In this document: in pieces, positions 1,008-55,338 of the stretch
Position numbering within the stretch: the first letter of the stretch is position 1
Layout of the letters: every line of letters starts with the position of its first letter
Virus record (IMG/VR): IMGVR_UViG_3300050821_013430
Coordinates: 372,001-436,000 of that record
Strand: one strand, 5' to 3'
Length of the DNA stretch: 64,000 nt
The notes under the pieces: model-generated
Seen by the model: only the letters and a program-made list of their open reading frames with translations
Database searches by the model: none
What the model was told of the DNA's origin: nothing
Program-made: the position numbers and the translations under genes

Positions 1008-1262
1008 TTAGGGTCGGTAGTTGAAAGTGATAGACATCCCGGTGGTGTTGGGCTCGGTGCAGATATACACCTTCGACTTCCAGGGATAACAGCAGCGGAT
1101 GAATTTGCAGGACAAGGATTGGTCAGGCGTTTGGTAGATGCCCTTCTCGTAGTCGAAGGTACCCGCACACCCGCACATGCTCAACAACACCAATAGACCG
1201 ATATACCTCACCCAATAATGCGGGGCTATTCCTTGCGGACGTGTAGAAGCATCCGACACCAT
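1008..1262 (-). CDS. putative lipoprotein/membrane protein
   Basis: Hydrophobic stretch followed by MCGC lipobox-like motif. Confidence 0.45.
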   Translation of the reverse strand: MVSDASTRPQGIAPHYWVRYIGLLVLLSMCGCAGTFDYEKGIYQTPDQSLSCKFIRCCYPWKSKVYICTEPNTTGMSITFNYRP

Positions 1263-1264
1263 TG

Positions 1265-1400
1265 GTGATATACTCTCCGAATGGTTTTAGCCGTTCGAGA
1301 TTGTGCCATCAACGCTGAGAGCCTGCTTGCCACGCTTGCGCGTGGGCTTCGCAGGTCTTACCTCAACTCCGACAAGGGTTGATATCCCAACCCCGTTCTT
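1265..1400 (-). ncRNA. putative omegaRNA scaffold of TnpB
   Basis: Structured 3' end overlapping the tnpB C-terminus; terminal hairpin TCGAACGG/CCATTCGG then TCAC end; 5' boundary approximate. Confidence 0.55.
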
Positions 1401-2522
1401 GCTTTTCAGCAAGGACATACCTTGTGTATGAATGTTGATCGCGGCATTCGCATCACGATCGTGATGCGTGCCGCAGTTTGAGCAATCCCATTCTCGATCT
1501 TTTAGGTCGAGAGTCTCATTGATATGCTGGCAGCAAGAACAAGTCTTGCTGCTCGGATAGAAACGATCAATGAAGATCACCTTTGAGCCATACTTGCTGG
1601 CCATATAGACCAGTTTCTGAACGAAGGAGTAGAGGCCTAAGTCTCCAATCTTGCGACTACATAAGGCTTGCATCCCTTTCAGGTTGAGGGTCTCTAAGCA
1701 AATTGTCTCGTAGGTTTGCACCAATTGGTAAGCCAACTGCCAGTGAAAGTCTTTTCGTTGGTTGGCGATGTCGTCATGAGCCTTGGCAAGCGCACGAAGT
1801 GCGCGCTTGCTATTCCCACTACCCTTGACCTTACTATCTAACTGCTGATTGAGTCTCCTGATCTTCTTGCTGCTTTGCTTGAAGAACAAGGGAGATTGGA
1901 TCGCTGTACCATCACTTCCTGTCAGGAAGTTTTTGAGCCCGAAGTCGAAACCGACGCTTTTACCCGATCTGGTTTCTTGTTTGGACGCTTCCTGAAAGTC
2001 TGTGGTGATGTAGATGAACCATTCTCCTAATGAGTTCTTTTTGACGGTGAGGGTTTTGATCTTACCCTCCCAGTCTCGGTGCTTGTGAAACCGAAATGTC
2101 TTTCCTCCTCGGCCGTGATAACTTTGTCCGCTGATGTAGAGCGTGTTGTCATCGAGTAGTTTGTAGCCAGTATCTTGCCTGAATGTGATGCTCCGATACT
2201 TGGGCGTCTTCTTGAATTTAGGAGGAGAGGTTTTTACGCCACGTCTCAGATCGTCAAAGAAGTGATCATAGCCGATGTATATACGGTCAACAATCTGACG
2301 AGTGGCTGTAGCATTGATCATCTGCCAGGCAGAATTAGGCTCGTTTCGCCTATCTCGCACCAGCCCATACATGTCGTAGAGACTGATGTAGGTCTTATCC
2401 CGAGAATATGCTTCCCGCTTGGTCAAAAGAACCCAATTGTAGATGTCGCAAGCCACCGTGAGCAAGGCGTCCAAATAGCGGGTTTTGCGAGTGGTATAGA
2501 GTTTGTAGGCGTAGGTCTTCAT
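1287..2522 (-). CDS. tnpB: RNA-guided endonuclease TnpB (IS200/IS605 family)
   Basis: RuvC-I GFDFG, RuvC-II ETL, zinc finger PSSKTCSCC...CSNC, RuvC-III DRDANAAINI; catalytic D/E/D intact. Confidence 0.95.
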   Translation of the reverse strand: MKTYAYKLYTTRKTRYLDALLTVACDIYNWVLLTKREAYSRDKTYISLYDMYGLVRDRRNEPNSAWQMINATATRQIVDRIYIGYDHFFDDLRRGVKTSPPKFKKTPKYRSITFRQDTGYKLLDDNTLYISGQSYHGRGGKTFRFHKHRDWEGKIKTLTVKKNSLGEWFIYITTDFQEASKQETRSGKSVGFDFGLKNFLTGSDGTAIQSPLFFKQSSKKIRRLNQQLDSKVKGSGNSKRALRALAKAHDDIANQRKDFHWQLAYQLVQTYETICLETLNLKGMQALCSRKIGDLGLYSFVQKLVYMASKYGSKVIFIDRFYPSSKTCSCCQHINETLDLKDREWDCSNCGTHHDRDANAAINIHTQGMSLLKSKNGVGISTLVGVEVRPAKPTRKRGKQALSVDGTISNG

Positions 2523-2530
2523 CTCACCAT

Positions 2531-2559
2531 ATCGTAATCCTCTGAGAGATGGTTGTCAA
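2531..2559 (-). promoter_or_regulatory. sigma70-type promoter for tnpB
   Basis: TTGACA-17 bp-TACGAT, 8 nt before the ATG. Confidence 0.7.
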
Positions 2560-6714: not shown

Positions 6715-7329
6715 TCAGTTCCAGCCCATATACCACTGCACCGACGGAGCCAGGGCATTCTCGGTTTGACCGTTGGGGAAGGCGGTTTGAGCAGTGATTA
6801 CGCGGAACATAAAGCCCACCCTCCGATGATCTCGCTCACTCCAAGGGGCGATCCTCCAATCATACCCAATACCAATACCAATGTTGCCTCCCCAAGCGGT
6901 GGCGCTGGTCTCTGCTGCGAGAGAAACCGCGGAAACGCCACTGGTCAGTAGAATATGCAGGCCCCTATACGGCACGGGATACCAATCAAGATAGGGCCCA
7001 GCGCTAAACAGGTTGAGACTGACATCGTTGGAAGTCGGATGGTTTTGCACCCCATTGACGGTCACGGCCGTGACGATCGATGCCACTTCCGATCCATATA
7101 CCCCGAAGGCCAAACCCGGCAGAACATACCCACCGAGATAGGTCTCAAACGAGAGCGCAGGGCCTCCGACAGAAACGCCGCTCAAACTCTCGGCGTCTTG
7201 AACGGCCCCGATACCGAAACCTGCTCGGGCTTGAACATCTCCGATCTGGCGTTCTCGCTCTTGCGCATAGGCAGGAGCCACCATCGTTGTTGCCATTGCT
7301 ACCACCGCACACATCATTGTCTTCTTCAT
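6715..7329 (-). CDS. outer-membrane beta-barrel-like protein
   Basis: Sec signal (MKKTMM...AYA), amphipathic Gly/aromatic strands, aromatic C-terminus (WYMGWN). Confidence 0.65.
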   Translation of the reverse strand: MKKTMMCAVVAMATTMVAPAYAQERERQIGDVQARAGFGIGAVQDAESLSGVSVGGPALSFETYLGGYVLPGLAFGVYGSEVASIVTAVTVNGVQNHPTSNDVSLNLFSAGPYLDWYPVPYRGLHILLTSGVSAVSLAAETSATAWGGNIGIGIGYDWRIAPWSERDHRRVGFMFRVITAQTAFPNGQTENALAPSVQWYMGWN

Positions 7330-10198: not shown

Positions 10199-10543
10199 TC
10201 ATGGCAACGAACACATCTGCACTTCTCGATTGGATCGCGAAGCCATTCCGCACGCCACTTGCTCTTTGGTCATCTTGTTGGAGCAGAAGGAGTAGAAGCG
10301 TCCAGTGGTGCCGTTGTCGCGAAACTCCTGATCGATCAATTCAGTAGCGACTTTCAGATGCAGCGCGTCATACTCGTGGTCGGGATCGAATTGAGTGGCG
10401 ATGGTCAGTGCGATGCTATGGGCGTAGAGCCGGTCGCAATCCTTGATGGACGCTTTGAGCGGCTTGTAGATGGCAGCATTGGAAGGATGGCGAGCGCATC
10501 CAAGGAAAGAGAGAACGAGGATGATGGGTAGATACTGCTTCAT
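10199..10543 (-). CDS. putative lipoprotein
   Basis: MKQYLPIILVLSFLG-C lipobox. Confidence 0.6.
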   Translation of the reverse strand: MKQYLPIILVLSFLGCARHPSNAAIYKPLKASIKDCDRLYAHSIALTIATQFDPDHEYDALHLKVATELIDQEFRDNGTTGRFYSFCSNKMTKEQVACGMASRSNREVQMCSLP

Positions 10544-12893: not shown

Positions 12894-13376
12894 TCAGTTG
12901 CTCACCGGCACCATCGGGCTTTCCACGAAACCGTTCGGGAAGAAGTTGTCGAAGCATCCCACTGTCAACGCAAACCCGCTGCCGGGAGCGCTTTCGCTTG
13001 CCACCAAACTCACCGCCTCGCTCTTGTAGGCCAGATTGAGATTGGACGAATTGAGCGTGTAGTTGCCAACATACTGGGCATCCACCTCATTGGCTCCGCA
13101 AGACCACTCCTTGGGCGTGAAAGTGATGGTGCCGCTTGAAAAGCCGGTAGAGTTGAAGATGCCACTTTCGATCTGCACCTCTCCCTGCGTAGGTGAATAC
13201 AGGTAGAGGTCATATAGGGAGTAGGTTCCGTCCTTGTTGAGGGTGAGGCCGAGACCTTCCGTTCCATCGGCGGTGGTGTAGATCCAATTGGTGTAGGGCG
13301 TCAGGGCTGCATCGTTGCTTCCGAAGCACCCCGCACCGCACACCAGTATCGCGCACATCATCGTTCTCATTGTCAT
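12894..13376 (-). CDS. putative lipoprotein (beta-rich, lipocalin-like)
   Basis: ILVCGAG-C lipobox; beta-strand-rich mature part. Confidence 0.65.
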   Translation of the reverse strand: MTMRTMMCAILVCGAGCFGSNDAALTPYTNWIYTTADGTEGLGLTLNKDGTYSLYDLYLYSPTQGEVQIESGIFNSTGFSSGTITFTPKEWSCGANEVDAQYVGNYTLNSSNLNLAYKSEAVSLVASESAPGSGFALTVGCFDNFFPNGFVESPMVPVSN

Positions 13377-13383: not shown

Positions 13384-13647
13384 TCACTTGACTTCTGGCA
13401 CGCACATTGTCGAAGCGCACTGGAAGATCATTGATCCGTCCTCGGTGTTGGGCGATTGAGACCAACTCTTCTCCACAAAGCCAGTCTTGCACACACCTCT
13501 TGCAGCCTTGGCACACTCTGCATAATCGGAACACACCACCTCTTTGTAGTCAGTCTCTCCGACTTGCTTGGTGGTGCTGCTCCAATGGGTGGGATTGCAT
13601 CCGAGCACGCTCACGCACGCCACCAAGCATAGCATTGTCGCTTTCAT
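13384..13647 (-). CDS. putative Cys-rich lipoprotein
   Basis: MKATMLCLVACVSVLG-C lipobox. Confidence 0.65.
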   Translation of the reverse strand: MKATMLCLVACVSVLGCNPTHWSSTTKQVGETDYKEVVCSDYAECAKAARGVCKTGFVEKSWSQSPNTEDGSMIFQCASTMCVPEVK

Positions 13648-20436: not shown

Positions 20437-20768
20437 GATGTCTCCTTGATCGCCTTCGACACCTCATCCGCCGAGAAAGTCGCCTCATCCACTTCGAGAT
20501 AGGCTACTCGCAGGTTATGGTTGGCTGCGTCCGTTTCCAGTTTGACCAGTCTCTCGGGGGAAAGTGGATAGACCAACATCACCCGATGCACATACCCGTG
20601 CGTACCGCTCAGTACAATCGCTTTCATCTCACACCTCTCTGGCAACATTCGCCCTTCGCTTTGGTTTGACTACGATCTGCCACACATCGATGGCAGTAAT
20701 GCCCAAGTAAGACCCCGCACCGACACAAGATCGGCTGCAAGTCAGACGAAGGACAGACAACTTCCCTA

Positions 20769-21065
20769 TTACACGACTGACAGGTCATCGTCTTCTTCCT
20801 CTTCTCGTCTGCACCAATCATCGATGAACCCTTCCACCAGCCTCACCAACTCCATGTTGGCGATGCGGTGGCTTCCGCTTGACTTCTTGTTCCGTCCGTT
20901 CGTCCTGATATCAACTGCTAACTGCTCCAAGCGAATGTCATTCGGGTTTTCCACCCACAAGTCGGTGAGTTTCTGCATCACCGCGGCTTTCTGTTCGTCG
21001 GTATACTCCTTCTCTTCCGGGTCAGAGTGCATTACCAGCGCCTTTGACTGCTTGGGGAAGTGCAT
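20769..21065 (-). CDS. hypothetical protein
   Basis: SD GGAGG; in tiling. Confidence 0.5.
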   Translation of the reverse strand: MHFPKQSKALVMHSDPEEKEYTDEQKAAVMQKLTDLWVENPNDIRLEQLAVDIRTNGRNKKSSGSHRIANMELVRLVEGFIDDWCRREEEEDDDLSVV

Positions 21066-21078
21066 TCATCCTCCTTGG

Positions 21079-21579
21079 TTAGTCCGAAGAAGCATCGTTG
21101 CAAACGCACAAGTTTGCCGAATTGAGATGGCATTCGGGTGCGACGCAAGCAACATCAGAAGCGGCATCCGTTGCAGCGTCGGGACACACGCAAGTCCCTG
21201 GCACTGGCTGAACGCAAGGTGCTTTGCAAACGAAGGCGTCCTTGCTTCCCGCATCGAGATCACAAGGATCGAAGTTGAAGTCCTGCATCCATCCATTAGG
21301 AGTACAGGTAAACCACCAGTGGCTGGCCATACAGACAGTGCTAACTACACCGTTAGTGCAAGAGCCTTTCACCATGTTGCCTTGCGCATCCTTCATGTAA
21401 GCGCAAGTGCAGGCGTCGCTGCCATCCCCGAAACCGGGATAGAAGGCGGGAGAGCCATCCTGCAAGAAACTGGGGTATTGATTGGCATCGTCGGGGACAT
21501 CGGCCGGGACGTATTCGCTGCCCGAGGCGCAGGCCGAGATGGCGAGAGCGGAGAAGATGATCAGTGTTGTGTTCTTCAT
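21079..21579 (-). CDS. Cys-rich lipoprotein
   Basis: MKNTTLIIFSALAISA-C lipobox; about 14 Cys; DAG/DAA motifs. Confidence 0.7.
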   Translation of the reverse strand: MKNTTLIIFSALAISACASGSEYVPADVPDDANQYPSFLQDGSPAFYPGFGDGSDACTCAYMKDAQGNMVKGSCTNGVVSTVCMASHWWFTCTPNGWMQDFNFDPCDLDAGSKDAFVCKAPCVQPVPGTCVCPDAATDAASDVACVAPECHLNSANLCVCNDASSD

Positions 21580-21978
21580 TGAGGTGTTCCTTTCGAGTTG
21601 AGTGTTTCGATTGATGTCTATACGGTAGACATCTCCTTGATCTCTTCTTGGGAGGCTTCTTCCGTGTCGTGCATATCGAGCACGTCGTAGATTTCGTCCA
21701 GTAGCGAATCGGGTGAGCCGAGACACACCACCGGACTAACTTCCAGATGCATTCCTGCTTGTGCCGTAGCCTCTCTCACCTTCTCGGGGATGGTGTAGTC
21801 ATCTCCGACGATGTAGCGAGCGACCGTGATATCAGGGGTGCAGTAGGCGAGCCTTACTAACCTCATTGGATCATCCTCCCTTGTCAGTGATGGTGGCTAA
21901 GCATGAACAAGATCAGACAACCGTAAGCGATCCCAACGCCCAACAGAAAGAACGCTGCCTTCTCTTTGCGAGTCATCG

Positions 21979-22236
21979 TTATACTCCACTTTCAATCGGC
22001 TTGACAATGCTCAACTTCAACTCGAAGGTATGCCCAACTTCGTCAGTATCGGTATCGAAGAAGACGATCTTGGACTTTTGGAAGTCCACCACGCAGTGGG
22101 CGAAGATATGACCAGACTTGAAATCACCAACATCCACCTTCAACTTCGGCTTCTCGAAGGAGAGCACGCCTTCGTCCACTGAGTCCCAAGTTTCCCACGA
22201 GAAGAGTTGCCCTTCGATTCCCGTTTCGATGCTCAT
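21979..22236 (-). CDS. hypothetical protein
   Basis: AGGAGAACGGACAATG start. Confidence 0.55.
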   Translation of the reverse strand: MSIETGIEGQLFSWETWDSVDEGVLSFEKPKLKVDVGDFKSGHIFAHCVVDFQKSKIVFFDTDTDEVGHTFELKLSIVKPIESGV

Positions 22237-22252
22237 TGTCCGTTCTCCTTGT

Positions 22253-22765
22253 TCATTCCTCACCACCAGCCTCAATCCAGTTTTGGATGGTGGCAAGTTT
22301 CCACTCACACCCTTGGTTCCGCGATTCCAGCCAGACTTTCAGCATGTAGACGCTACCGCACGACGAACATCGCCACATTGATCCGATGCGGATCAACTCC
22401 ACCTTATTGCGCCAGAAGAATCTCCACCATCCGCCATTGACGATGATATGCCTGGCGCAGAGTTTATCGGTATCGGCGATCATCGAATTAGTCCCAGGCA
22501 AACCCTTTGTTCCAGGTGGTGAGCACTTATGAGGGATAGCCTCCGGCTTGACGTGGATCAATCCAAACTTGGGATTGGGCGGTGGTTGCACTGCCACACT
22601 GATATCTCGATAGGGATGCTTTTCGATGGCGGTAGTGTTCATCTTGATCTCTTCCTTCAACAGGCAGTCATTACAGAGCCTGCAAGCGAGGAGGTTGTCT
22701 TTCCACGGATAGAGGGTGCTCATTCGAGAGCACTTGTCGCAGGTGCCGCGATAGGTGGCCATCAC
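22253..22765 (-). CDS. zinc-binding paralog family A protein with extra N-terminal zinc finger
   Basis: CDKC..CRLC, then HPYR...HKC.PP...WRCSSC...WIEAGG. Confidence 0.6.
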   Translation of the reverse strand: MMATYRGTCDKCSRMSTLYPWKDNLLACRLCNDCLLKEEIKMNTTAIEKHPYRDISVAVQPPPNPKFGLIHVKPEAIPHKCSPPGTKGLPGTNSMIADTDKLCARHIIVNGGWWRFFWRNKVELIRIGSMWRCSSCGSVYMLKVWLESRNQGCEWKLATIQNWIEAGGEE

Positions 22766-23694
22766 TCACTTACTCCTGTTCTCCGGTTCGACCCAATCGA
22801 TCCCTAACACTCGAAACAGGTCTTCCTCATTCTCCCCGCCCAACTTCTCATCCCCACGCCACACACCATACTCATTGACCGTTAGACCTTTGACCTGCGC
22901 CATAGTCCTTACGAAGATGTTCCACTCCCTGCTACCAGTACAGTGATTCAGCAGCGCCCCATAACTCTCCCTACCTGCGAACCAGAAGTCGCACTGTATC
23001 CCACCTTCGTCCGGCAGAGTGATACTGATCCTCTTCTCACCACCCGAGATCACCTCAAACGCGATCTTTCCTTGCATCAGAGCGTAGGATAGGTCGATCA
23101 CTTTCGTCTTTGACTCGTCGATGCAAACGGCGATGTCGATATCCTTAGCCGTTTCCAGTTTGCGACGGATACTCCCACACACCGTTGCATCCAACACATT
23201 GGGCAACGCCAACATACACTCTCGCACCTTGTCTGCAATCCTCTTTGCATCCTCATATGGGATGCGCTTCGACTCTTTCTTGGTGGTAGCCAGCACCGCT
23301 TCCGTCAGTTTGGGATCAAGTTTCCCCTCTCGTGCCGCTTCCACCAACGCTTCGATGCCGCTATAACCCTCCTCATACAGACGCATTGCTCGCTTAGGGC
23401 CAATTCCATGCACCACCGTCATGGTCAGCATTCCAATCGGATAGTCAGCGGCAAGAGTCTCGTACTTCTCGCTGGTGCCGTGTTCCAGAAACTCGCGGAT
23501 CACTTCTCGGATACTGACACCAACACCACGAACCAGTTTCAGGTTGCGTCTTCGATCGATTCTCCGGCGTATTCCATTTCCAGGATGCTCTTGGCCGCTT
23601 TCTCGTAGGCTTCCGTCTTGAAGTGGTTTTCACCGTTGAGTGTTTTGAGTTGCGAGATCAGTTTGAGATGATCAGCGACCTCTTGGTTTCGCAT
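22766..23694 (-). CDS. polX: DNA polymerase X family protein (no PHP domain), interrupted by a -1 frameshift near 23543-23630
   Basis: N-terminal MRNQEVADHL...AYEKAA in one frame; HhH GVG and GIGPK, GSIRR..KDID and third Asp (QCDF) in the other frame. Confidence 0.85.
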
Positions 23695-23921
23695 TACAGC
23701 CTCCACTGTTTGGATATTGGGACTGGCAGTGGCGCGCCTTCCTTATGGGCGACCACCAGATAGACTTCCGGACGGATACGACTAACCTCGAAGTGTTCGT
23801 TGAGGTGGTTCTTGATGATCACTACGGTATGAGTGTCGATCATCCCCACCTTATGGAAGTCGATGAGGGTATCGATGATGTCTCGGGTGAGTTTGGCGGG
23901 TGGACGGGCGTAGATGAGCAC
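23694..23921 (-). CDS. hypothetical protein
   Basis: TAATG-coupled to polX. Confidence 0.5.
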   Translation of the reverse strand: MLIYARPPAKLTRDIIDTLIDFHKVGMIDTHTVVIIKNHLNEHFEVSRIRPEVYLVVAHKEGAPLPVPISKQWRL

Positions 23922-23950
23922 GGTACCTCCGTTTGGATTGTGGATTGACT

Positions 23951-32512: not shown

Positions 32513-33109
32513 TCATGGTCTGATCTCCTCCCTTCTTACAGTCGTTTCACTCCTCCGCAGGAATCCAAACGGCCCGTCCCAATCGTATTGGTGGGTCAAT
32601 AGCATGTCGAACAACTCCTTCTCAATGGCGCAGAACACTTCACCATGCATCTTATCCACGAAGATGGCTCGAAACGGACGACGCTCATTGTGGATATGGT
32701 GCGAGAGTTCGTGCAGCAGAATGATCAGATCATGCGACCCCATATAGATGGTGCGCTTGTATGCACGGTAGTAGCCTCCGCTATACTCATACCCCTCTTC
32801 CTTGCCGCGCACTTCCTTGATCGACTCTACACCCATCGCTTGGCATAGATCGTCGCACAACTTCTCCATTGCCTCGAAAGAGAGGATCTTGTGCGCATGC
32901 GCGTAAGTCCTGATGAACGTTCTCTCTTGTGCAAAACACGCACGATACTCCTCGTCCTTCGCTATACGCGCGTCTTCAATGAAGGGATGACCAGCCGGTA
33001 GTTTCCGTTTAGCGAGGTGATACCGATCCAATGGAGGATAGGTCATCAGATATGCTTGATGCAGTACCAACTTGATCTCTCGCCAGCCCATGTCAGTGCG
33101 CCACATCAA
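32513..33109 (-). CDS. SprT-like HEXXH metallopeptidase-like protein
   Basis: LLHELSHHIH...HGEVFC. Confidence 0.65.
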   Translation of the reverse strand: MMWRTDMGWREIKLVLHQAYLMTYPPLDRYHLAKRKLPAGHPFIEDARIAKDEEYRACFAQERTFIRTYAHAHKILSFEAMEKLCDDLCQAMGVESIKEVRGKEEGYEYSGGYYRAYKRTIYMGSHDLIILLHELSHHIHNERRPFRAIFVDKMHGEVFCAIEKELFDMLLTHQYDWDGPFGFLRRSETTVRREEIRP

Positions 33110-33494
33110 TCAGGTAGGAATGCTCCATCGCGTCGTCGTTCTCCACCAGGAAGAAGACGGTAGTTGGCTTCTCCACCTTGACATTCACCACGCACTTGTC
33201 TTGTGCAGCGATCTCCCCGCCCATCGCATATGCACGTGGACGTAGGTCAGGAAGAGTGCCGGTAGCGATCTCAACGCCGGATAGTTCCTCCATACGGATT
33301 CCGATGACCGCGCATGACATCGAGCCTTTGCCCCGCACCTCGAAGTGATAGCGCCCGACATGTGAGAGGTCGAGCACTGTCAATCGGAATGAGCCGGGGG
33401 AGAGGTCTTGGGTGGTGAGGTAGTCTTTGGCTTCTGCGGTGGAAGAGAGGGCGAGACAACCGATGAGAGCAATGGAGACGATAACGGGTTTCAT
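33093..33494 (-). CDS. secreted beta-rich protein
   Basis: Sec signal ending AEA. Confidence 0.6.
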   Translation of the reverse strand: MKPVIVSIALIGCLALSSTAEAKDYLTTQDLSPGSFRLTVLDLSHVGRYHFEVRGKGSMSCAVIGIRMEELSGVEIATGTLPDLRPRAYAMGGEIAAQDKCVVNVKVEKPTTVFFLVENDDAMEHSYLIDVAH

Positions 33495-33564: not shown

Positions 33565-33999
33565 CTACTGACAGGCCGAGCCCCCGCTCACGCACACCTG
33601 GCCTGCTTGACAATATCTGCCATTGCCACAATCCACAGAATCGAGCGGGCGACAGGTATGATCGCTTCCGCACAACTCGTAGGGGCAATAATATCCGCCC
33701 GCGCAGCAATCTGAAGGAACCGGAATGCATCCCGTTCCACAAACCAGAGTGCCGTTGGGGCATCCACCGCCACCGCCTCCTCCACCACCGCCGAGACAAA
33801 CACCAGCACCGCAAACTGGAGCGCTGGGCGGACAACTTGTACCATTGCCGCAGCAAGTATACCCGGGGCCCGGAGTACAGGTGCCATCGCTGCATTGTGT
33901 TCCGCCACCTGGACACGGATCCACCGTGCAAGCCGTTTGGCTCGCCAGACCGATTCCGATGATCACCACCGACACCAAACCCATCATTGTCTTCTTCAT
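33565..33999 (-). CDS. Cys-rich repeat lipoprotein
   Basis: SQTA-C; repeated C..G..CC..G..CP modules; poly-Gly linker. Confidence 0.7.
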   Translation of the reverse strand: MKKTMMGLVSVVIIGIGLASQTACTVDPCPGGGTQCSDGTCTPGPGYTCCGNGTSCPPSAPVCGAGVCLGGGGGGGGGGCPNGTLVCGTGCIPVPSDCCAGGYYCPYELCGSDHTCRPLDSVDCGNGRYCQAGQVCVSGGSACQ

Positions 34000-34416: not shown

Positions 34417-34800
34417 TCATCGCACCCACACTGCGGTCTGATTCAGCGGCTTGATATCCCCACTGGTCAAACCCGATGAAACCGAACAGGCGTATTGCTG
34501 TTGGTCGGTCAAAACCACCTCACCCCAACTCAATCCTTGTTCCTGGCAAACGAGATGGTGTCGTGCTACCGCCTGAGCGAAGTTGTCTTCCACATAGACA
34601 GCCGCACACAAACAGAAGGTTTGGGCCTGGCCACTCAATCCATTCATCTGTCGATTGCAGAAGTCCAGTGCCATCTTACCGAAGTCCTTATAGGTCTCCT
34701 GAGTGATGGGGGTGCAAGGGGTCATGGGAGGAGTGGGCGCAGGAGTAGCACTGCACCCAATTGACGACATCACCATCAGTACGGTCATATAGGCTTTCAT
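34417..34800 (-). CDS. putative lipoprotein
   Basis: MKAYMTVLMVMSSIG-C. Confidence 0.65.
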   Translation of the reverse strand: MKAYMTVLMVMSSIGCSATPAPTPPMTPCTPITQETYKDFGKMALDFCNRQMNGLSGQAQTFCLCAAVYVEDNFAQAVARHHLVCQEQGLSWGEVVLTDQQQYACSVSSGLTSGDIKPLNQTAVWVR

Positions 34801-35171
34801 TGGTCGTCTCCATTGCAGAGGTGAACGATGCCCGTTCCGTTGGGGCCTTGGCAACTCGACCCAACCTCACATTGGAGGTCATTGCAGTCGGTGGCCGAAT
34901 TGTCGGGAGCAAAGCATATCCAAGGGTATTGGAAGCCGGAAGCATCGGCAGGATAGACCCACATTCCCGTATCCTGATCGAAGGGATAACAGGGGTAGGT
35001 CTTGTCGTTCCAAAGTGCCGAATCCACATCATCGTGAGTGATGGTGCAGCACAGGTCGGAGTGATTGCCATCATCCGCCACATCCGGAGAGGCATCGAGG
35101 TTCTTGGTATAGGGATCGTCTGCGCCGCAACCCACGCTCACGAGCAGACAGATAGCAGTATAGGGTTTCAT
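34797..35171 (-). CDS. Cys-rich lipoprotein
   Basis: MKPYTAICLLVSVG-C. Confidence 0.65.
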   Translation of the reverse strand: MKPYTAICLLVSVGCGADDPYTKNLDASPDVADDGNHSDLCCTITHDDVDSALWNDKTYPCYPFDQDTGMWVYPADASGFQYPWICFAPDNSATDCNDLQCEVGSSCQGPNGTGIVHLCNGDDQ

Positions 35172-35172: not shown

Positions 35173-35730
35173 TCAGTTGTCCTCGCAGAAGCCGGGGCTC
35201 TGATGATGCACCTGCGCGTATTGCAGTACATCGGCGCACATGACATGAGGTGCGGCAGGGCCAAGATCGGGATACATCACCGCAGCATGTTCCACATAGG
35301 TGTGGACTAAGCCCATGGCATGTCCCACCTCATGTTCTACCGTAGTGGTGAACTGATCGTCCGTTTCCACATCCGTCGGAAGCCACACACTACCCCAAGA
35401 GTTTCCACTCGGATACCAGTAGTAGTTGGTGTAGCCAATGTCGGAAGAGTTGGTGTCTTTCTCGATCTGCGCGCGCGTCTCCCCGTTGATGGAAATGGCA
35501 TTGACGCAGGTGCCATCATCGCAAGATCGATTCTCGAAGAAGACATCGAAGGAGATTCCGGAATTGGCTCCCTTAGCCTCCCACTCATTGAGACCATCCA
35601 ACACCAACTGCACACGATGTGGACTGAGGGTGGTCGGATTGATGTAGACTTGGTAGTGATTGGGCAGATGTCCACATCCAAACGATCCGAGAGTCATCAA
35701 TCCCACCATTCCGAGCGTGAACTTGTTCAT
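35173..35730 (-). CDS. matrixin-like (metzincin) metalloprotease lipoprotein
   Basis: SFG-C lipobox; HEVGHAMGLVH followed by Met-turn AVMYP. Confidence 0.85.
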   Translation of the reverse strand: MNKFTLGMVGLMTLGSFGCGHLPNHYQVYINPTTLSPHRVQLVLDGLNEWEAKGANSGISFDVFFENRSCDDGTCVNAISINGETRAQIEKDTNSSDIGYTNYYWYPSGNSWGSVWLPTDVETDDQFTTTVEHEVGHAMGLVHTYVEHAAVMYPDLGPAAPHVMCADVLQYAQVHHQSPGFCEDN

Positions 35731-35909
35731 TGGGCAACCCCTTCTTGCACATCAGCGGTTAGAGAGTTTGAGGTGGAGGGAGAATCCACTTGCATAGGCT
35801 CAACTTTGCAGTCGCGCCAATCCACCATGACCCCATTGGGAGTCATTAGAGCGATACCAGGAACACAAGCAGAAGAAGAGAGAAGAAAGAGCATGGCTAC
35901 CAGTTTCAT
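35727..35909 (-). CDS. small putative lipoprotein
   Basis: LLSSSA-C. Confidence 0.5.
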   Translation of the reverse strand: MKLVAMLFLLSSSACVPGIALMTPNGVMVDWRDCKVEPMQVDSPSTSNSLTADVQEGVAQ

Positions 35910-39709: not shown

Positions 39710-39948
39710 TGTTTCACCTCCACCAACCGATACAACTTCTTGGTATCCGTGTCGTAGAGCAGCACCTCTCCGCCCACATCCTCTGCATCCGCATACACCA
39801 CATTGGGGCCATGTAGGTATTGGGCTAAGTAGGCGGAATCATACTTCCAGGCAGAGGAAAGCGGGCCCCATTGAAGATCGCTATTCAGAAACTGATTCAG
39901 ATGTTTGGGATGCCGAATCACCAGAGCCAGATCGTCGATGTATCTCAT
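39706..39948 (-). CDS. hypothetical protein containing the 32-bp repeat
   Basis: ATGA overlaps at both ends. Confidence 0.6.
   Translation of the reverse strand: MRYIDDLALVIRHPKHLNQFLNSDLQWGPLSSAWKYDSAYLAQYLHGPNVVYADAEDVGGEVLLYDTDTKKLYRLVEVKQ
39811..39842. repeat. 32-bp exact direct repeat, copy 1
   Basis: ATGTAGGTATTGGGCTAAGTAGGCGGAATCAT, identical to 51570-51601. Confidence 0.95.
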
Positions 39949-40742: not shown

Positions 40743-41536
40743 TGTCGTTCTCCCTTACTGTCGCTTGTCGAAGTAATCGGCAATCTCCGGGAGCAGGGCC
40801 ATCGCCAATGCGAAACCCGACGCCACGCCCACAACGATGAGAGCAACTACATGAGCAGCCATATCACACCTCCTCGAATTGAACGGGGTTTTGACGGTCT
40901 TGGAGTTTCCAAGCCTTGACGCAGAGAGCCACGGCAGCGCCCAAGAAAGAGAACGCGGTGATGAACAAGACCACAGCCAGGGAGAAGTGCGCAGGGAAGG
41001 TCATATAGCCCACACCCAGCGCAACGCATCCGGTCAGTTTGCCCATTACCAAGGCGCCGATAGCGAACCGATTGGTACGGATCACCTCGGGAGAAGGGGG
41101 AACTACTTGGTAGTACATGGTGAGACTTCCTTTCCTCAGGAACACAGCCAGGAAACCAGGCCCAATACCCCGGAACCGATCACCAGTCCAATCCCAATCA
41201 GGATCAGAATCCAGGCACCGAAGTAGGCGAGGCGGAACCAACTCACATGATGCTTATACACGCCCACCATCCTACTTCCCCTTACTCTCGAAGACGATAG
41301 GGGCCGGGATGCAATACTGAATCGCCCCATCGCACACCCACCCGTCCTTACAAACGGAATCATTGGCGCAGGCGGTAGGAGGAGGCTCCGCCATCGCTTC
41401 CACCAGAACCTGAGAAATGGCCAGGTCATGCCGAAGGCGCAGGTCATCCAACACCACCAGCCCCAAACTCAGAGAGCCGAGGAAGGAGGCGAGGATCACC
41501 CACTTGTACTCATACATACGCTGATAGAGGTTCATG

Positions 41537-41824
41537 TCAGACCTCTCCCAAGATGTCGAAGATGTTGGCCGTAGGAACCACCGGAGCGGCGGGGGTGGGA
41601 TGCTTGGCGTTGAGAGACTCCCAGCGGTTGAACTGCCCACGCACGATGACATTGCCGTTCTGATGCTTCAAAGTCTGCGCATTCCCCATCTCGGAGAACT
41701 TGGGCGGGGAAGCGGCACGATCCTGCGACACCGTGCCACGATTGTTGGATCGATTGTGGCGACGGAATCCCGACTTGCTCGCCTTGTTTTCCGACTTGTC
41801 CGCACTCTTGTTCTGCTTGGCCAT
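41537..41824 (-). CDS. basic low-complexity protein
   Basis: GGGAG SD; in tiling. Confidence 0.55.
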   Translation of the reverse strand: MAKQNKSADKSENKASKSGFRRHNRSNNRGTVSQDRAASPPKFSEMGNAQTLKHQNGNVIVRGQFNRWESLNAKHPTPAAPVVPTANIFDILGEV

Positions 41825-41860
41825 GGTAGTATCTCCCTATGCGTTGATTGGTTGAATTAC

Positions 41861-41902
41861 CTGCGATTGACTGCGAACGATTTCGCTCGGAATCAAACGC
41901 AG
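41861..41902. terminator. long imperfect intergenic hairpin
   Basis: CTGCG/CGCAG, TTGA/TCAA and CGAACGA/TCGCTCG stacked stems; function not established. Confidence 0.4.
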
Positions 41903-41953
41903 AGAATTAGAACCCAGGACGGAGCGGATATAGGTGTAGGTAAGGAGTTCAAC

Positions 41954-42634
41954 ATGAAGAGTATCGAACGAGAAAAGGCACGGGTTATGCGACAAGAAGG
42001 ACAGAGTGTTAGGGACATTGCTAAGGCGTTAGGGGTCGCCAGAAGTAGTGTCTCTGTATGGGTGAGGGATGTTGTACTTACTCAGGCGCAGATAGATGCG
42101 CTAACGACGCGCAATCCTATCTACGATAGGCAGCACAAGGGCGCGAAAGGAAGACAGCGATTAGCCAGGGAAGCACGCATTGAAGCCAGAAAAAACGGAC
42201 ACGAGGTAGCAAAACGAAAGGAATATCTGCACGCATTGGGATGTGGTCTGTACTGGGGCGAAGGAGCAAAGGATAGGGTAAGCTGTCAATTAGCCAACAG
42301 CGACCCATACTTACTGAAAGTATGGCTTCAATTCCTACATCAGTATTTCCCTGATGTGAAAACGACCCTGATCATCCATTGCTACACTGGCAACGGTCTA
42401 TCAGTTGAGGAGATAGAGAATTACTGGTCTGACACCCTCGGTATTCCTAAGGGCGATTTCAGGAAGACAAGAGTGAATCCAATAAGTAGAGCGAGCCTAC
42501 ACAAGAAGCCACAGAACACGCTTCTCTACGGTACAGCACATATCACTGCTAAGAAAGGGATGCGAATAGTTCAACACATCTTCGGGGCCATTGAGGAATA
42601 TGGTGGCTTCTCTACTGAGTTTGGGTTGGACTAA
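41954..42634 (+). CDS. HTH plus LAGLIDADG-like homing-endonuclease-type protein
   Basis: AAGGAG SD; N-terminal HTH (SVRDIAKALGVARSSVSVWV); LYWGEG...NSDP..L..W..FL. Confidence 0.75.
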   Translation: MKSIEREKARVMRQEGQSVRDIAKALGVARSSVSVWVRDVVLTQAQIDALTTRNPIYDRQHKGAKGRQRLAREARIEARKNGHEVAKRKEYLHALGCGLYWGEGAKDRVSCQLANSDPYLLKVWLQFLHQYFPDVKTTLIIHCYTGNGLSVEEIENYWSDTLGIPKGDFRKTRVNPISRASLHKKPQNTLLYGTAHITAKKGMRIVQHIFGAIEEYGGFSTEFGLD

Positions 42635-42728: not shown

Positions 42729-43109
42729 CTACTGCGGCACCAACTTCTTGATCATGTACTTGACCAAATCCCGATCAAAAGGCCACTCCTGTGTGGGAAT
42801 CTTGGCAGCAGTCAGCCATGACCGAATGATGGCCGCGCCTTTCCCACCCCAACTATGGCTCACTGCTTGTGCGGGATAGTAGGATGGATCGAGTTCATTC
42901 ACGATGAACTTCGCCACATCCTCCCCACTCCCATCTACGCCCAGGTCGTGATCCAACATCAGCAGACCGATCCGAACCGTCCCGGCTTGCAGAATCTCCT
43001 TCCCCTCATCGCAGGAGAAGGCATGCAAGACCACATGCCCCGCCGCGGTAAAGAGGTCTTCCGCCATGTCGTGCCGTGTCTGGTCATCATCCACGATCAG
43101 GATGTTCAT
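42729..43109 (-). CDS. stand-alone receiver-like domain (cyclic-phosphate-processing REC type)
   Basis: ILIVDDD...LDHDLG...G.DVA..I...VSHS; lacks the canonical REC Lys. Confidence 0.7.
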   Translation of the reverse strand: MNILIVDDDQTRHDMAEDLFTAAGHVVLHAFSCDEGKEILQAGTVRIGLLMLDHDLGVDGSGEDVAKFIVNELDPSYYPAQAVSHSWGGKGAAIIRSWLTAAKIPTQEWPFDRDLVKYMIKKLVPQ

Positions 43110-44276: not shown

Positions 44277-44867
44277 TCAATCGTCTTTGCAGAAGCCGTT
44301 GTTCTCATGGCGCAGGTTGGCATACTGCACCACATCCACGCACATGACATGAGGGGCTGCCTTCTGGTATTCAGGGAACATCAATGACACACCCGGTACG
44401 AAGGTGTGTTGAAGGCCTAACCCATGTCCCACTTCGTGCTGAGTGATGCCACTGAAACCTACAGCATCAATCCCATTCGCCTCCTCATCCGCCTCATCCC
44501 CAGGGACGAACACCCTCGCCCATTCGTGCCCCATGTGATCTGTCCAGTGATAGGTGGTACCCACTGCGTTAGGGTCTCCGGAGAGGCGCCGAATCTCCTC
44601 CACGCTCTCACTGGTAATGGAGAAGGCGTTGTCGCAGGACTCATCGCACATCCGCTCCTCAATCACCACATCGAAGGACAGCCCCACATTGGCAGCCTTG
44701 GACTCCCACTCATCCAGACTTTCGAGCACCATCTGCATGTGGGGTGGGTCGAAGTGGGGGCTGATGTAGACGGTGTAGTGCGAAGGAGGATTGGCGCAGG
44801 CGGTGCCGAAGACGGATGCGGCGAACATCCCCAGCAAACCACCCACACCTAATTCCAGGGTTTTCAT
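44277..44867 (-). CDS. matrixin-like metalloprotease lipoprotein (paralog of 35173)
   Basis: GTA-C; HEVGHGLGLQH; SLMFP Met-turn; shared AAPHVMC.DV.QYA. Confidence 0.85.
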   Translation of the reverse strand: MKTLELGVGGLLGMFAASVFGTACANPPSHYTVYISPHFDPPHMQMVLESLDEWESKAANVGLSFDVVIEERMCDESCDNAFSITSESVEEIRRLSGDPNAVGTTYHWTDHMGHEWARVFVPGDEADEEANGIDAVGFSGITQHEVGHGLGLQHTFVPGVSLMFPEYQKAAPHVMCVDVVQYANLRHENNGFCKDD

Positions 44868-47602: not shown

Positions 47603-47848
47603 TCAGTCCAAGTGCCCACCCGTTCGGGGCGTAGGCACACCGTTGCTACCTCCGCCTACTTCCTGCCACGGCATTCCCGCATCATCCCAGGTTGGCGCCC
47701 CGCAAGGGATGCCTTGTTGATGCGCCGTGTAGCAGAAGTCAGGATACTGTTGCCCACCGTCATCCGCGGTGGGGGTGTAGTCTACCGGGCCCGCACCATA
47801 GGCGCAGCCGCTCAACATCACGCACGCTGCCATCAGGTATCGAGCCAT
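47603..47848 (-). CDS. small lipoprotein
   Basis: VMLSG-C; DDGG/DDAG motifs. Confidence 0.6.
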   Translation of the reverse strand: MARYLMAACVMLSGCAYGAGPVDYTPTADDGGQQYPDFCYTAHQQGIPCGAPTWDDAGMPWQEVGGGSNGVPTPRTGGHLD

Positions 47849-51569: not shown

Positions 51570-51601
51570 ATGTAGGTATTGGGCTAAGTAGGCGGAATCA
51601 T
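51570..51601. repeat. 32-bp exact direct repeat, copy 2
   Basis: Identical to 39811-39842; a degenerate third copy lies at 51495-51517. Confidence 0.95.
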
Positions 51602-51678: not shown

Positions 51679-52049
51679 TGGTACAGTTGTTGTATGGGAT
51701 AGAAGCATGCCAAGCCTAGAGGGTAGGGGGAGGTAGGACAGGGCGGGGATGGCCGGTATCTTGCACCGGATAAACTCATGCCAAGGGTGCCGTGTAGTAC
51801 AAGGTGGGAGATGTAGGGCAAGGTCGGGCGGTGCAAAACCCATGCCAAGTGGTAGGATAAGGTGGTTTGGGGCCGGTTGGCATTGAAACTGCAAGGGAAA
51901 GGAACATGCCAAGGGCTTTTGGTAGGAAGTTGTAGGAGATGGTAGGTTTCTCGAGGAATGGCATAGGTATTGCAGGGGAAAGAAGGATACCAGCAGAAAG
52001 GTGGGATATTGTAGTTGGTATGGGGATTGCAAGGACAAGAAGCATGCCA
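51679..52049 (+). repeat. array of 34-bp units with sigma54 -24/-12 geometry
   Basis: TGGY-N8-TG(C/T)A-N11-(C/G)AT(G/A)CCA at 51679, 51750, 51878, 51959 and 52016; partial unit ending 51847. Confidence 0.8.
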
Positions 52050-52923: not shown

Positions 52924-52998
52924 ATGGTGTCCTTTGTTATTGACATGGTAAATCCAAGAGAATAAGAAGTCAAGAGGATAAAATGACATTGGGAAGAG

Positions 52999-53904
52999 AT
53001 GCTGAAAACTGGAATCATTACCGCCCCACCCGCTATGGTGAGAGACATCAGCGACTTCGTGGTAGGAGCTTATGCTACACGGATCCTGGAAAACTTTGAG
53101 GAGAAGAGATTCCCACGGAACAAAGAAAGTATGGCGATACGAACCGTGCTGGAAGCGTTGGCCGAACGAAGCGGCAAGAAAATGATCATCCACCAGATAG
53201 ACTTCGCCTACTACTTTGCGAAATTGAATTTTGATGATTGGGATGGGCCGGTGGGACCTGGGGAGAAGATAAAAGAAGTGCTAGGAGAGCACGGAGTAGT
53301 AGGAGTAAAGTGCTATGAAGTCTTCTACCCTACAATGGACAAACATCCACGACCGGGAGCTAATGCTCAATGGAGCTATAACTTCCAAATCACCACCTAT
53401 GCAGAATTGCCAATGGCTCAGAATCTGCAAGACTTTCGTCAATTGACCTTGGATTTGCAAGGGAAACAGAATGAGCTGAAGGTAACGGTGGCCCATGAAC
53501 TCATTCATATGGTCCAGTATATCATTCAGATAATGCGAGGATTGAAAGAGATAGGAGGACTACCTGCTGAGAAAGTCAGGCATTCGGCCCCTCCCTTGGT
53601 TGATCCGAGCATCCCTTATCACTTACGGGATGAAGAGTTTTACACCAGTTTGGCGGATACCATTGAAACCTTTATGGAGCATGTTCGGAATGTGCCGGTG
53701 GAATACCGGGAAATAGCACTGCGGAGCTTTTTGAACCTACCATTCGCGGCGAGCAGAGATGCTCGGAAGAATTTGGTTGTTAGCACTTTCTTCGAGAAGA
53801 TGCATAAGGATGATCCGAAAAGATGGGCGGAGTATGCCAAGAAGTTTGTGAAGCATTTGAGTCAGCATCCGGAAATCATGGGAATGGAAAGCGCTGCGGA
53901 ATAA
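52999..53904 (+). CDS. HEXXH zincin-like protein
   Basis: VAHELIHMVQY...EEF. Confidence 0.65.
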   Translation: MLKTGIITAPPAMVRDISDFVVGAYATRILENFEEKRFPRNKESMAIRTVLEALAERSGKKMIIHQIDFAYYFAKLNFDDWDGPVGPGEKIKEVLGEHGVVGVKCYEVFYPTMDKHPRPGANAQWSYNFQITTYAELPMAQNLQDFRQLTLDLQGKQNELKVTVAHELIHMVQYIIQIMRGLKEIGGLPAEKVRHSAPPLVDPSIPYHLRDEEFYTSLADTIETFMEHVRNVPVEYREIALRSFLNLPFAASRDARKNLVVSTFFEKMHKDDPKRWAEYAKKFVKHLSQHPEIMGMESAAE

Positions 53905-53987
53905 AGCATTACGCGCTGCATAAAAAGGCATCTCTTGTTTGAGGTCCTTAGAAACATCCCTCAAAATCTTCCAAAAAGGCTGCACAT

Positions 53988-54710
53988 ATGAATTTGTTGA
54001 AGGCTCTGTTGATTGCTTGTTTGTCGATTTTCAGTTTCGGTTGTGGTACCAGTATGCACGTCAGTGGGCAAGTTAGTGTGCCAAACTTGATGAGTAAGAC
54101 GGTAGTACTAACTACTTATGTGATGAATGAAGATGATGGTACCGCCTCAGTAAAACCATATTGCAGCGGAGTCTTTATTTCGGAACGGGAGATTTTGACA
54201 GCAAGACATTGCGCGGCAGCGATAGCAGAAAAGGATAACGTGGAAGAGTTGGATAAGCTTCCAATGCACTACACCTTAGCCTCCGAAGCGGTAGGCGTTG
54301 GCAAGGAGCCTGCTGCGATGCATTTGGCCTTCGTGGTCAAAGAAGATAAGGACAAAGATTTGGCACTACTGCTATTGCCGAAACAAGGGATTCCGGCTCA
54401 TGGAATTGCGCGAATCGCGGACGAGATGCCCGCACTGGGCGAAGCGGTGGAAGTTATTGGAACGCCCACGGGAAATTATTTTACTTTGAGCCACGGCTAT
54501 GTTGCGGCAGTCAGAGAAGACTATCATGATCGAAAAGGTACCTTTTTGCAAGTGAGTGGTAATGGCATCTACTTCGGCAACAGTGGCGGACCTGCTTACA
54601 ATGAAAAAGGTGAGCTGGTCGGGATTGCAGACTTTTTGAGTATGAGATTGCCCGGCAGCGTTTTCTTTGTGGCAGTACCGGAACTGAAAGAGTTTATCGA
54701 AGAAGTCTAA
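53988..54710 (+). CDS. trypsin-like (S1) serine protease lipoprotein
   Basis: SFG-C; LTARHC, DLALL and GNSGGP catalytic triad. Confidence 0.9.
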   Translation: MNLLKALLIACLSIFSFGCGTSMHVSGQVSVPNLMSKTVVLTTYVMNEDDGTASVKPYCSGVFISEREILTARHCAAAIAEKDNVEELDKLPMHYTLASEAVGVGKEPAAMHLAFVVKEDKDKDLALLLLPKQGIPAHGIARIADEMPALGEAVEVIGTPTGNYFTLSHGYVAAVREDYHDRKGTFLQVSGNGIYFGNSGGPAYNEKGELVGIADFLSMRLPGSVFFVAVPELKEFIEEV

Positions 54711-54726
54711 CGACTGCTTGTAAGCC

Positions 54727-55338
54727 ATGAAATTTTGGTTGTTGATAGACTTGTGCTTAGCCCTTCTTTGTGTGGGGTGCTATCATAACTTCTACCAATA
54801 CACCCGAGTTGCCCCAACAGAGATAAGTTGGCGGATTATTTCGGTCTATGTCGATCGTGGTTTTACGGAACAAGAAAAGATAGAAGTCGTCAATGCTATC
54901 ATGCAGTGGAATTATGTTCTCAATAACTACATCCAATTACGAATAGAATCCTTTGATGCAACCTTCGATGAGGATAGTGTTGCGGGAATACAAGAGAAGC
55001 GGGGATACATGTTCCGGAAAATTTCTGAGTCGGAAGCCTGCGCCTTGAAAGAATGCTCCGATGAAACCTTAGCCTTTGTTAATGGAATAGGAAGCAGAGG
55101 CGATACCGTTTATGTCATTGGCGGAAGAGAACGGGAAGAAAAACTAAGAGGCGTAGTAATGCATGAAATCGGGCACCTGATGGGCGTCAGACATATTGAA
55201 GGTACCTTGATGGACGAAAACTACGACCCCATTACCTTTCAATGCGTGGATCGAATTACCGAAAGGTGGGCAGCGTATCGACAAGGACTGGACCCCAATA
55301 AATTGAACTATTGTATCATTGGAGATGATCCGAACTAA
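54727..55338 (+). CDS. matrixin-like metalloprotease lipoprotein
   Basis: CVG-C; HEIGHLMGVRH; TLMD Met-turn. Confidence 0.85.
   Translation: MKFWLLIDLCLALLCVGCYHNFYQYTRVAPTEISWRIISVYVDRGFTEQEKIEVVNAIMQWNYVLNNYIQLRIESFDATFDEDSVAGIQEKRGYMFRKISESEACALKECSDETLAFVNGIGSRGDTVYVIGGREREEKLRGVVMHEIGHLMGVRHIEGTLMDENYDPITFQCVDRITERWAAYRQGLDPNKLNYCIIGDDPN

Follow-up and report, generated by a model that had tools for sequence, protein, structure and literature searches.

We describe a set of exported envelope proteins, predicted from their genes, in a 64,000-nucleotide stretch of viral DNA (hereafter the window), which comprises bases 372,001-436,000 of the 472,749-bp IMG/VR virus record IMGVR_UViG_3300050821_013430 (hereafter G000), rated 100% complete by CheckV. 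These are real genes carried by the phage, in far greater number than chance would give, and in two of their families the lipobox persists among many distant relatives; we consider it very likely that they encode genuine exported envelope proteins of the phage. Judged from sequence, the exported set would comprise about 30 lipoproteins, at least one outer-membrane beta-barrel, Cys-rich periplasmic proteins, six metzincins and one HtrA-like protease. Because one complete record combines genes for a large terminase, a portal protein and a virion structural protein with replication genes (two helicases, one of them DnaB-like, and an NAD ligase), G000 is, on its gene content, a tailed megaphage, in agreement with the bacteriophage origin given in a preliminary description of this DNA.

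G000 falls into two parts. The core (1-243 kb and 427-473 kb; 37-45% GC) carries large genes in synteny with G002, a 432,844-bp IMG/VR relative, and the arm (243-427 kb, ~180 kb or almost 40% of the genome; 46-58% GC, with 45% for the whole genome) holds more than 400 small genes, nearly all on the minus strand, mostly orphans and with few in common with G002. The open reading frames (ORFs) considered here, named by their first window position, sit at the end of this arm where variability and GC content are highest, and in a short plus-strand block at window 52.5-55.3 kb; among the called genes at 356.8-427.3 kb of the genome, the number with a match in G002 is zero.

Lipoprotein signals are enriched in the window and in the arm

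All 18 ORFs named as lipoprotein genes in the preliminary description are present at their coordinates, and each is the best coding frame over its span. The claim that they encode a signal peptide with a lipobox held for 14 of them (10199, 13384, 21079, 24035, 24764, 27788, 28909, 34417, 34797, 35173, 35727, 47603, 53988 and 54727), which carry a clean type II signal, taken as a Lys- or Arg-bearing n-region, a hydrophobic core and a [LVI..][..][GAS]C lipobox with its Cys at residue 13-24; the other four (1008, 12894, 33565 and 44277) are atypical. For 10199-10543, 21079-21579, 34417-34800, 34797-35171 and 44277-44867 the signal requires an internal ATG rather than the longest ORF. The two further ORFs described as secreted, 25861 and 33093, do resemble substrates of the Sec pathway and signal peptidase I, the clusters reported at 24.0-26.1, 27.8-29.6 and 33.1-35.9 kb are real, and two exported proteins had been overlooked, namely the outer-membrane beta-barrel at 25319-25864 and the product of 6715-7329.

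A lipoprotein signal is found in 16 of the 133 called window genes of at least 50 amino acids (aa) (12%), whereas shuffled N-termini produce 0.65 on average and never more than 4. The signal occurs in 27 of 374 arm genes (~7%) and in none of 278 core genes, and across the arm 32 hits lie on the coding strand versus none on the non-coding strand. A codon model trained on the arm places every named ORF at the top of its six frames, with weak scores only for 25861 and 35727; this holds also for 1008 and 10199, in whose place a gene caller had chosen antisense ORFs. Some of the scored genes belonged to the training set. Since the shuffling, opposite-strand and codon-model controls agree, and since conserved families exist among these proteins, the lipoboxes are unlikely to be due to chance. 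When genomes were processed by one crude pipeline, the lipoprotein share was 3.9% for this phage, 2.9% for G002, 0.3% for a more distant relative and 0.9% for the size-matched 490-kb Agrobacterium jumbo phage Atu_ph07 (seven raw hits, about four of them convincing).

The mature parts of the 18 proteins contain 4.5% Cys versus 2.1% in other window proteins (p = 0.003), and a script counted an even number of Cys residues in 14 of them, an odd number in three and no Cys in one; after hand correction of the cleavage site of 1008, the count is even in 15 of the 17 Cys-containing mature parts. This excess and even parity fit disulfide-bonded proteins and oxidative folding outside the cytoplasm. The preliminary description had also given many of these proteins DAG/DGG motifs and Ser/Gly linkers; the Cys richness stands, whereas DAG/DGG occurs in only 5 of the 18 and long Ser/Gly runs in two or three.

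A collagen-like lipoprotein family with a conserved C-terminal domain

Two of the clean lipoproteins are collagen-like paralogues:

24035-24520 (-), collagen-like lipoprotein, paralogue of 27788; lipobox, G-X-Y repeats and conserved C-terminal domain
27788-28330 (-), collagen-like lipoprotein with G-X-Y repeats at residues 21-58; Pfam Collagen, 1.4e-6

They are 37% identical and have in common a domain of about 115 aa at the C-terminus. When this domain was used in an exhaustive profile search, 259 cluster representatives were recovered, all distant relatives; among 148 relatives that were fetched, 104 carry a lipobox, collagen runs occur in 94, and the majority terminate in C-x-x-N-x-Y. From the single sequence of 27788 AlphaFold gave no usable model (pLDDT 35), and modelling with the family alignment gave a confident structure (pLDDT 92) in which the C-terminal domain forms a small closed beta-barrel. 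Fold searches of the latter model against the PDB and the ESM Atlas returned nothing above noise, and the only clear structural relative is an AlphaFold DB cluster annotated as 'collagen-like protein' (A0A250ILU9); as modelled, the barrel is a new domain.

Six genomic contexts of the family were examined, and most of them point to phage accessory genes. On contigs of 446 kb, 110 kb and 106 kb the gene belongs to a long array in which small orphan genes follow one another on a single strand; of these, the 110-kb contig also bears Peptidase_M10 and TnpB genes, as G000 does. The fourth context, a 53-kb contig, has its genes in the same order as the 106-kb array. In the fifth, the gene lies on the opposite strand, in the manner of a moron, within a 35-kb phage-like and temperate-looking contig, and the sixth is chromosomal.

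Collagen repeats recur in the core of G000, among very large proteins (up to 2,443 aa) that are probably fibres (G000 92195-99244, 20502-31939, 55480-61272, 445746-452283 and 456864-466870). Long G-X-Y repeats were aligned directly in G000 92195-99244 and 464450-466870, and the collagen gene at 92-99 kb gives a local GC spike (52%). Homology of the collagen-like lipoproteins to these giant fibre proteins was considered and rejected, as only the G-X-Y repeats are common to them and not the C-terminal domain.

Predicted exported proteases

Four window lipoproteins are recognisable as proteases:

35173-35730 (-), matrix metalloproteinase (MMP)-like metzincin lipoprotein, 185 aa; HEVGHAMGLVH and Met-turn; weak matches to Pfam Peptidase_M10 and Reprolysin
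44277-44867 (-), metzincin lipoprotein, 196 aa, 45% identical to 35173; atypical lipobox GTAC and a Glu in the n-region
53988-54710 (+), HtrA/DegS-like serine-protease lipoprotein, 240 aa, without PDZ; Pfam Trypsin_2, 6e-19
54727-55338 (+), metzincin lipoprotein, 203 aa; HEIGHLMGVRH

Small metzincins number six in the genome, and every one is encoded in the arm, three of them within the window; five of the six carry a lipobox and the sixth an N-terminal membrane anchor. The zinc site is present in all six paralogues, with invariant H, E, G and H (HExxGH) and a third ligand that is H in four and D in two; the Met-turn Met152 (35173 numbering) is likewise invariant, and all have a C-terminal Cys. 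Three of the loci score above the Pfam cut-off for Peptidase_M10 (24 bits) and three just below it, the match being to the C-terminal third of the model, and a profile of the six paralogues matches karilysin and MMP catalytic domains at 1e-8. The ESM Atlas neighbours of 35173 are matrixin clusters, many of them viral; a search of IMG/VR with 35173 gave no hits. The closest solved structures to 53988 are Deg/HtrA proteases (4.5e-8).

Remaining exported proteins of the window

Most of the set falls outside the collagen-like and protease groups:

1008-1211 (-), candidate small lipoprotein, the weakest of the set; GTG start, cleavage between MRYIGLLVLLSMCGC and AG; coding score 12.3, which beats the plus-strand ORF 984-1196
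6715-7329 (-), Sec signal (…APAYA/QE) and beta-rich protein of 204 aa, possibly outer-membrane or periplasmic; coding score 30, no Pfam hit
10199-10543 (-), lipoprotein, 114 aa, cleavage between MKQYLPIILVLSFLGC and A, 4 mature Cys; no Pfam or PHROG family
12894-13370 (-), probable lipoprotein, 158 aa, atypical lipobox GAGC; coding score 41.8, weak Ig-like (Big_3_5) hint
13384-13647 (-), small Cys-rich lipoprotein, 87 aa, from lipobox, codon model and Cys count
21079-21579 (-), Cys-rich lipoprotein, 166 aa, 14 mature Cys, internal ATG start; no Pfam, NCBIfam or PHROG family
24764-25288 (-), lipoprotein, 174 aa, no detectable relatives; other pipelines also call a 174-aa gene
25319-25864 (-), predicted outer-membrane beta-barrel, 181 aa; Sec signal and C-terminal beta-signal …GIGFQWLF with terminal Phe
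25861-26076 (-), small secreted Cys-rich protein, 71 aa, 10 Cys; weak coding score of 6, Logan annotation calls a 71-aa gene
28333-28764 (-), context gene rather than a member of the exported set, predicted cytoplasmic hexapeptide-repeat acyltransferase between two lipoprotein genes; Pfam Hexapep, 3e-12
28909-29559 (-), lipoprotein, 216 aa, with a 35-residue Ser/Gly linker after the lipid Cys and a 10-Cys C-terminal domain; no Pfam, NCBIfam or PHROG family
33093-33494 (-), secreted protein, 133 aa; Sec signal (…STAEA/KD)
33565-33999 (-), secreted Cys/Gly-rich protein, 144 aa, 20 Cys; atypical QTAC, signal peptidase I cleavage possible instead
34417-34800 (-), lipoprotein, 127 aa, 6 Cys; last gene of a four-lipoprotein operon
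34797-35171 (-), Cys-rich lipoprotein, 124 aa, 8 Cys; operon member
35727-35909 (-), small lipoprotein, 60 aa; overlaps the metzincin gene 35173 by 4 bp, weak coding support
47603-47848 (-), small Pro/Gly-rich lipoprotein, 81 aa, from lipobox and codon model

The operon runs 35727-35173-34797-34417, and two of its three junctions are 4-bp overlaps and the third a 1-bp gap. A Pfam scan of 25319-25864 gave no hit; by features and structure, its ESM Atlas relatives are OMP_b-brl, OmpW and autotransporter barrels, with TM values of 0.72-0.76 to small barrels. The acyltransferase encoded at 28333-28764 may modify a surface sugar.

Genome organization and contiguity of the arm

Among GenBank phages the best relatives of the G000 terminase are only 27% identical and belong to Bacillus siphoviruses, and IMG/VR holds many relatives, including those of G002 (63% identity) and of G001 (IMGVR_UViG_3300021407_000383; 100%). 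G002 repeats the layout of core and GC-raised arm, with a core of 30% GC and an arm (241-432 kb) reaching 45%. In both genomes GC is 10-18 points higher in the accessory arm than in the core and keeps climbing as the most variable end is approached. Possible explanations are that early genes have a host-like codon usage, that arm DNA was recently acquired from GC-rich donors or that a mutational regime is at work.

Both flanks of the arm are conserved phage modules syntenic with G002, and the arm shares their strand. At the right-hand boundary, unitig depth in the source run (Logan unitigs) is 12.3 on one side and 9.1 on the other, and the assembly graph branches there only at a 32-nt exact repeat, of which G000 also holds the other copy, at window 39,811. 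This direct repeat, ATGTAGGTATTGGGCTAAGTAGGCGGAATCAT, occupies window 39811-39842 and 51570-51601, with a 69% copy at 51483, and breaks unitigs at k=31. A 472,404-bp contig in an ENA assembly carries the same lipoprotein gene, and 2.75 kb of the window (23,771-26,520) is 100% identical to part of a 3.5-kb contig from another JGI sample. We thus see only a slight chance that the arm is chimeric with the phage core.

G001, from another sample, corresponds to ~22-243 kb of G000 and is listed in IMG/VR as a 221-kb 'provirus' rated 52% complete; its end falls exactly on the 243-kb GC boundary between core and arm. The 'provirus' label is attached to four of the five large relatives checked, and provirus trimming appears to discard such arms as 'host'. 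Envelope-protein repertoires in arms that such pipelines cut away are probably under-counted in viral databases.

Indications of the host

Since an outer-membrane barrel with a beta-signal is among the phage proteins, the host should be diderm. GGAGG-type motifs precede many starts of arm genes (a 5-mer in 38%, at least a 4-mer in 64%), from which the host should also use Shine-Dalgarno sites. All six phage tRNAs lie in the arm and read A/U-rich codons (AGA, AUA, UUG, GGA and GAA), so the phage probably has a lower GC content than its host. The habitat of the host is soil, and the public runs containing G000 sequence are soil metagenomes. Among the nearest ESM Atlas clusters, Myxococcota are the commonest for the metzincin (by features) and for the beta-barrel (the top three by structure); these are leads only, and the same lists interleave Acidobacteriota, Bacteroidota, Bdellovibrionota and many viral clusters. 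A scan of genome collections with the ClpC-like gene of the arm gave 37-44% identity to actinomycete Clp, which is uninformative and contradicts the diderm signals.

Other elements of the window and arm

A gene-free region at 50.9-52.5 kb contains five spaced copies of a ~34-nt motif, TGGCAT-N5-TTGCA-N12-CATGCCA (window 51679-52049, +), the only such cluster in the genome. The cluster coincides with a flip in gene orientation, a drop in GC (57% to 47%) and the minimum of cumulative GC skew. The motif fits what we take to be the sigma-54 -24/-12 consensus, and the cluster could represent tandem sigma-54 promoters for the plus-strand protease-lipoprotein block, origin iterons or regulator sites.

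Four diverged TnpB genes (OrfB_IS605/Cas12f-like TNB) are present, two in the window (1287-2522, -; 56099-57220, +) and two elsewhere (G000 149200-150411 and 312047-313069); the TnpB in the array of the 110-kb contig, which is not related to G000, is similar. Just upstream of a tRNA-Arg gene and the first lipoprotein cluster, window 22766-23503 (-) encodes a family X DNA polymerase (pol beta palm and thumb), apparently split from an HHH_8 ORF at 23539-23694 (-). A stand-alone receiver-domain protein (42729-43109, -; cREC_REC, 1e-7) lies beside a tRNA-Glu gene, with a helix-turn-helix protein on the opposite strand at 41534-42634. The arm further encodes a 739-aa ClpC/ClpB-like AAA+ chaperone (G000 353968-356187, -), a 1219-aa protein with a MazE/AbrB-like match (G000 330987-334646, -) and a 371-aa lipoprotein with a plant-type Phi_1/EXORDIUM domain (6e-25; G000 264766-265881, -).

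Discussion

The preliminary description had proposed that the phage remodels the surface of the infected cell or exports cargo to neighbouring cells; the large set of lipoproteins and secreted proteins on which this was built is real, and an envelope role is its most reasonable reading, whereas export from cell to cell is unsupported. The phage genome contains no LspA gene, so export and lipidation would fall to host machinery: the products would leave the cytoplasm via the Sec, Lgt/LspA, Lol and Bam systems of the host, the lipoproteins and the barrel protein would lodge in the outer membrane or beneath it, and the periplasm would be the site where proteases and Cys-rich proteins act. Receptors and surface polymers might thereby be masked, cleaved or modified, yielding an altered cell surface that would shield a long-lived infected cell and, afterwards, its progeny against other phages and against adsorption to debris. 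A long replication cycle would make such protection of the infected cell worthwhile. In small phages a single lipoprotein, such as Llp of T5, Cor of phi80 and N15 or Bor of lambda, has this role, which the arm would take to a larger scale. We judge this envelope-remodelling explanation, taken as a whole, to have about an even chance of being right, and give slightly less credence to exclusion or receptor remodelling as its main purpose.

Several points weigh against this explanation. The orphan window lipoproteins, which make up most of the set, have no relatives in Pfam, NCBIfam, PHROGs or GenBank phages, a word-indexed search of 5.8 billion proteins returned only the query itself for 24035 and 35173, and any role for the relative-less lipoproteins is one that we purely infer. 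The lipoprotein signals were called with our own heuristic (PROSITE-like, G+LPP-like and own patterns) and not with SignalP, and the proteases may have a part in lysis or be directed at other targets.

Lysis is indeed one of the alternatives, in which part of the set would serve release of the progeny through o-spanin-like lipoproteins and through proteases that cut tethers between outer membrane and peptidoglycan or capsule proteins. The small Pro/Gly-rich 47603 and 35727 are o-spanin-like in size, the plus-strand block at 52.5-55.3 kb combines two protease lipoproteins with its own upstream control region, and a candidate lysis cassette outside the window (G000 300073-301676, -) places an SLT gene (301,446), a 69-aa lipoprotein gene (300,854) and the gene of the membrane-anchored metzincin (300,073) next to one another; SLT lysin candidates lie at genome 301,446 and 124,052, both outside the window, and the phage genome holds no T4-type lysozyme. 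A single cassette would nevertheless account for two or three genes and not for thirty, the collagen-like family is also moron-like in a temperate-looking phage, and a Pfam scan of part of the window ORFs recognised no lysin, holin or i-spanin-like partner beside the window lipoproteins, leaving lysis an unlikely function for the set. We regard as similarly unlikely that the exported proteins act outward, as proteases, adhesins or antagonistic factors that target other organisms or substrates on behalf of the infected 'virocell', a role to which the six MMP-like proteases and one HtrA-like protease, the possibly surface-exposed collagen-like lipoproteins, whose barrel domain faintly recalls those of neisserial surface lipoproteins, and the hexapeptide acyltransferase among the lipoprotein genes would lend themselves.

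Still less probable is that the host is a myxobacterium and that the phage lipoproteins pass to kin cells by TraA/TraB exchange, pre-conditioning neighbours or delivering SitA-like toxic cargo. The soil sample, the mostly myxococcotal Atlas clusters of the metzincin and the beta-barrel protein and a tRNA set that suggests a GC-rich host are consistent with this proposal, as is the precedent of SitA toxins, which are lipoproteins delivered by exchange (PMC5562445, PMC8546572). Against it, the Atlas taxa are leads that share their lists with other phyla and viral clusters, searches of GenBank phages gave no match to known Myxococcus phages, and the label 'myxobacterial-style' in the preliminary description was not borne out: the Cys-rich proteins match no NCBIfam model, so that no myxobacterial family of Cys-rich repeats was detected, and DAG/DGG motifs and Ser/Gly linkers are rare. 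The genome's GC content of 45%, with 52-58% in the arm, also lies below the 68-70% or so of cultured myxobacteria. The further suggestion of SitA-like cargo fails on length, as proteins of 60-240 aa are too short for an escort domain and a nuclease, and no toxin domain was found in Pfam, NCBIfam or PHROGs. Least credible of all, in our estimation, is an artefact, with the arm as host or foreign DNA mis-joined to a phage or the lipoboxes as chance features of spurious small ORFs: the cut of G001 by IMG/VR exactly at the GC boundary, the abrupt GC rise from about 40% to 50-58% and the predominance of orphans among the arm genes would fit a mis-join, but the modules on both flanks are syntenic with G002, strand and depth continue across the junction with little change, a second assembly yields a contig of nearly equal length and bacterial housekeeping genes are absent among the window genes scanned, while the shuffling and opposite-strand controls, the codon model and the conserved families speak against chance.

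Envelope remodelling by the phage may be framed more broadly. Neither this clade nor any lipoprotein arsenal of a huge phage turned up in a search of the literature, and we tentatively propose, while holding it rather doubtful, that the clade's ~180-kb GC-elevated and fast-turnover arm is a 'secretome' of dozens of lipoproteins, barrels and proteases that rebuilds the host envelope and would be the equivalent, in a bacterial virus, of the poxvirus terminal regions, that the collagen-like family is a widespread phage-borne module for remodelling or exclusion and that, if the host were a myxobacterium, outer-membrane exchange would passively spread the proteins to uninfected kin. These findings provide two testable families, the collagen-like lipoproteins with their predicted new domain and the mini-metzincin lipoproteins, which recur in other huge-phage contigs.

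Comparison with known systems

Single phage lipoproteins that block or mask receptors, at the surface of the infected or lysogenic cell, include Llp of T5, Cor of phi80, N15 and T1-like phages, Bor of lambda and Ltp of the Streptococcus phage TP-J34. The window lipoproteins resemble these in being phage genes with a type II signal peptide whose products would reach the envelope by the host lipoprotein pathway, and one relative in the collagen-like family is a moron-like gene in a phage-like contig. They differ in lacking sequence resemblance (no PHROG or Pfam hit) and in being known from genes alone; moreover, the phages listed above have one such gene each, and here there are about thirty together with a barrel and proteases. 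If the envelope reading is correct, ~30 lipoproteins, barrels and seven proteases would constitute a repertoire of a different order from that of the single-lipoprotein phages.

In Myxococcus, a lipobox with outer-membrane sorting is enough for transfer between cells, and sitA genes sit on the prophage-like mobile elements Mx-alpha. The SitA proteins are lipoprotein toxins delivered by TraA/TraB outer-membrane exchange (PMC5562445, PMC8546572), and each combines an escort domain of ~375 aa with a C-terminal nuclease and a paired immunity gene (PMC8546572). Their likeness to the window lipoproteins lies in the lipobox and, for 28909, in a disordered linker after the lipid Cys; by contrast, the latter total 60-240 aa and bear no toxin or immunity signature. 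The phage metzincins share the HExxHxxGxxH/D zinc site and the Met-turn with karilysin of Tannerella forsythia and with MMPs, but only some 50 residues surrounding the zinc site are matched, and the phage proteins, ~150-180 aa when mature and predicted to be lipid-anchored, have an N-terminal half of their own and a C-terminal Cys pair.

For the arm as a whole, the nearest parallels, which are analogies only, are the hyperplastic regions of T4-like phages and the terminal regions of poxviruses, which encode secreted host-interaction proteins: in each, a conserved core is accompanied by fast-turnover, small, lineage-specific genes enriched for exported proteins. The arm of G000 differs from both in its ~180-kb length, in a GC gradient 10-18 points above the core and in carrying all of the phage tRNA genes. 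Were envelope remodelling to hold, very large phages with long cycles would be reprogramming the envelope of their hosts in a way comparable to what large eukaryotic viruses do to the cell surface.

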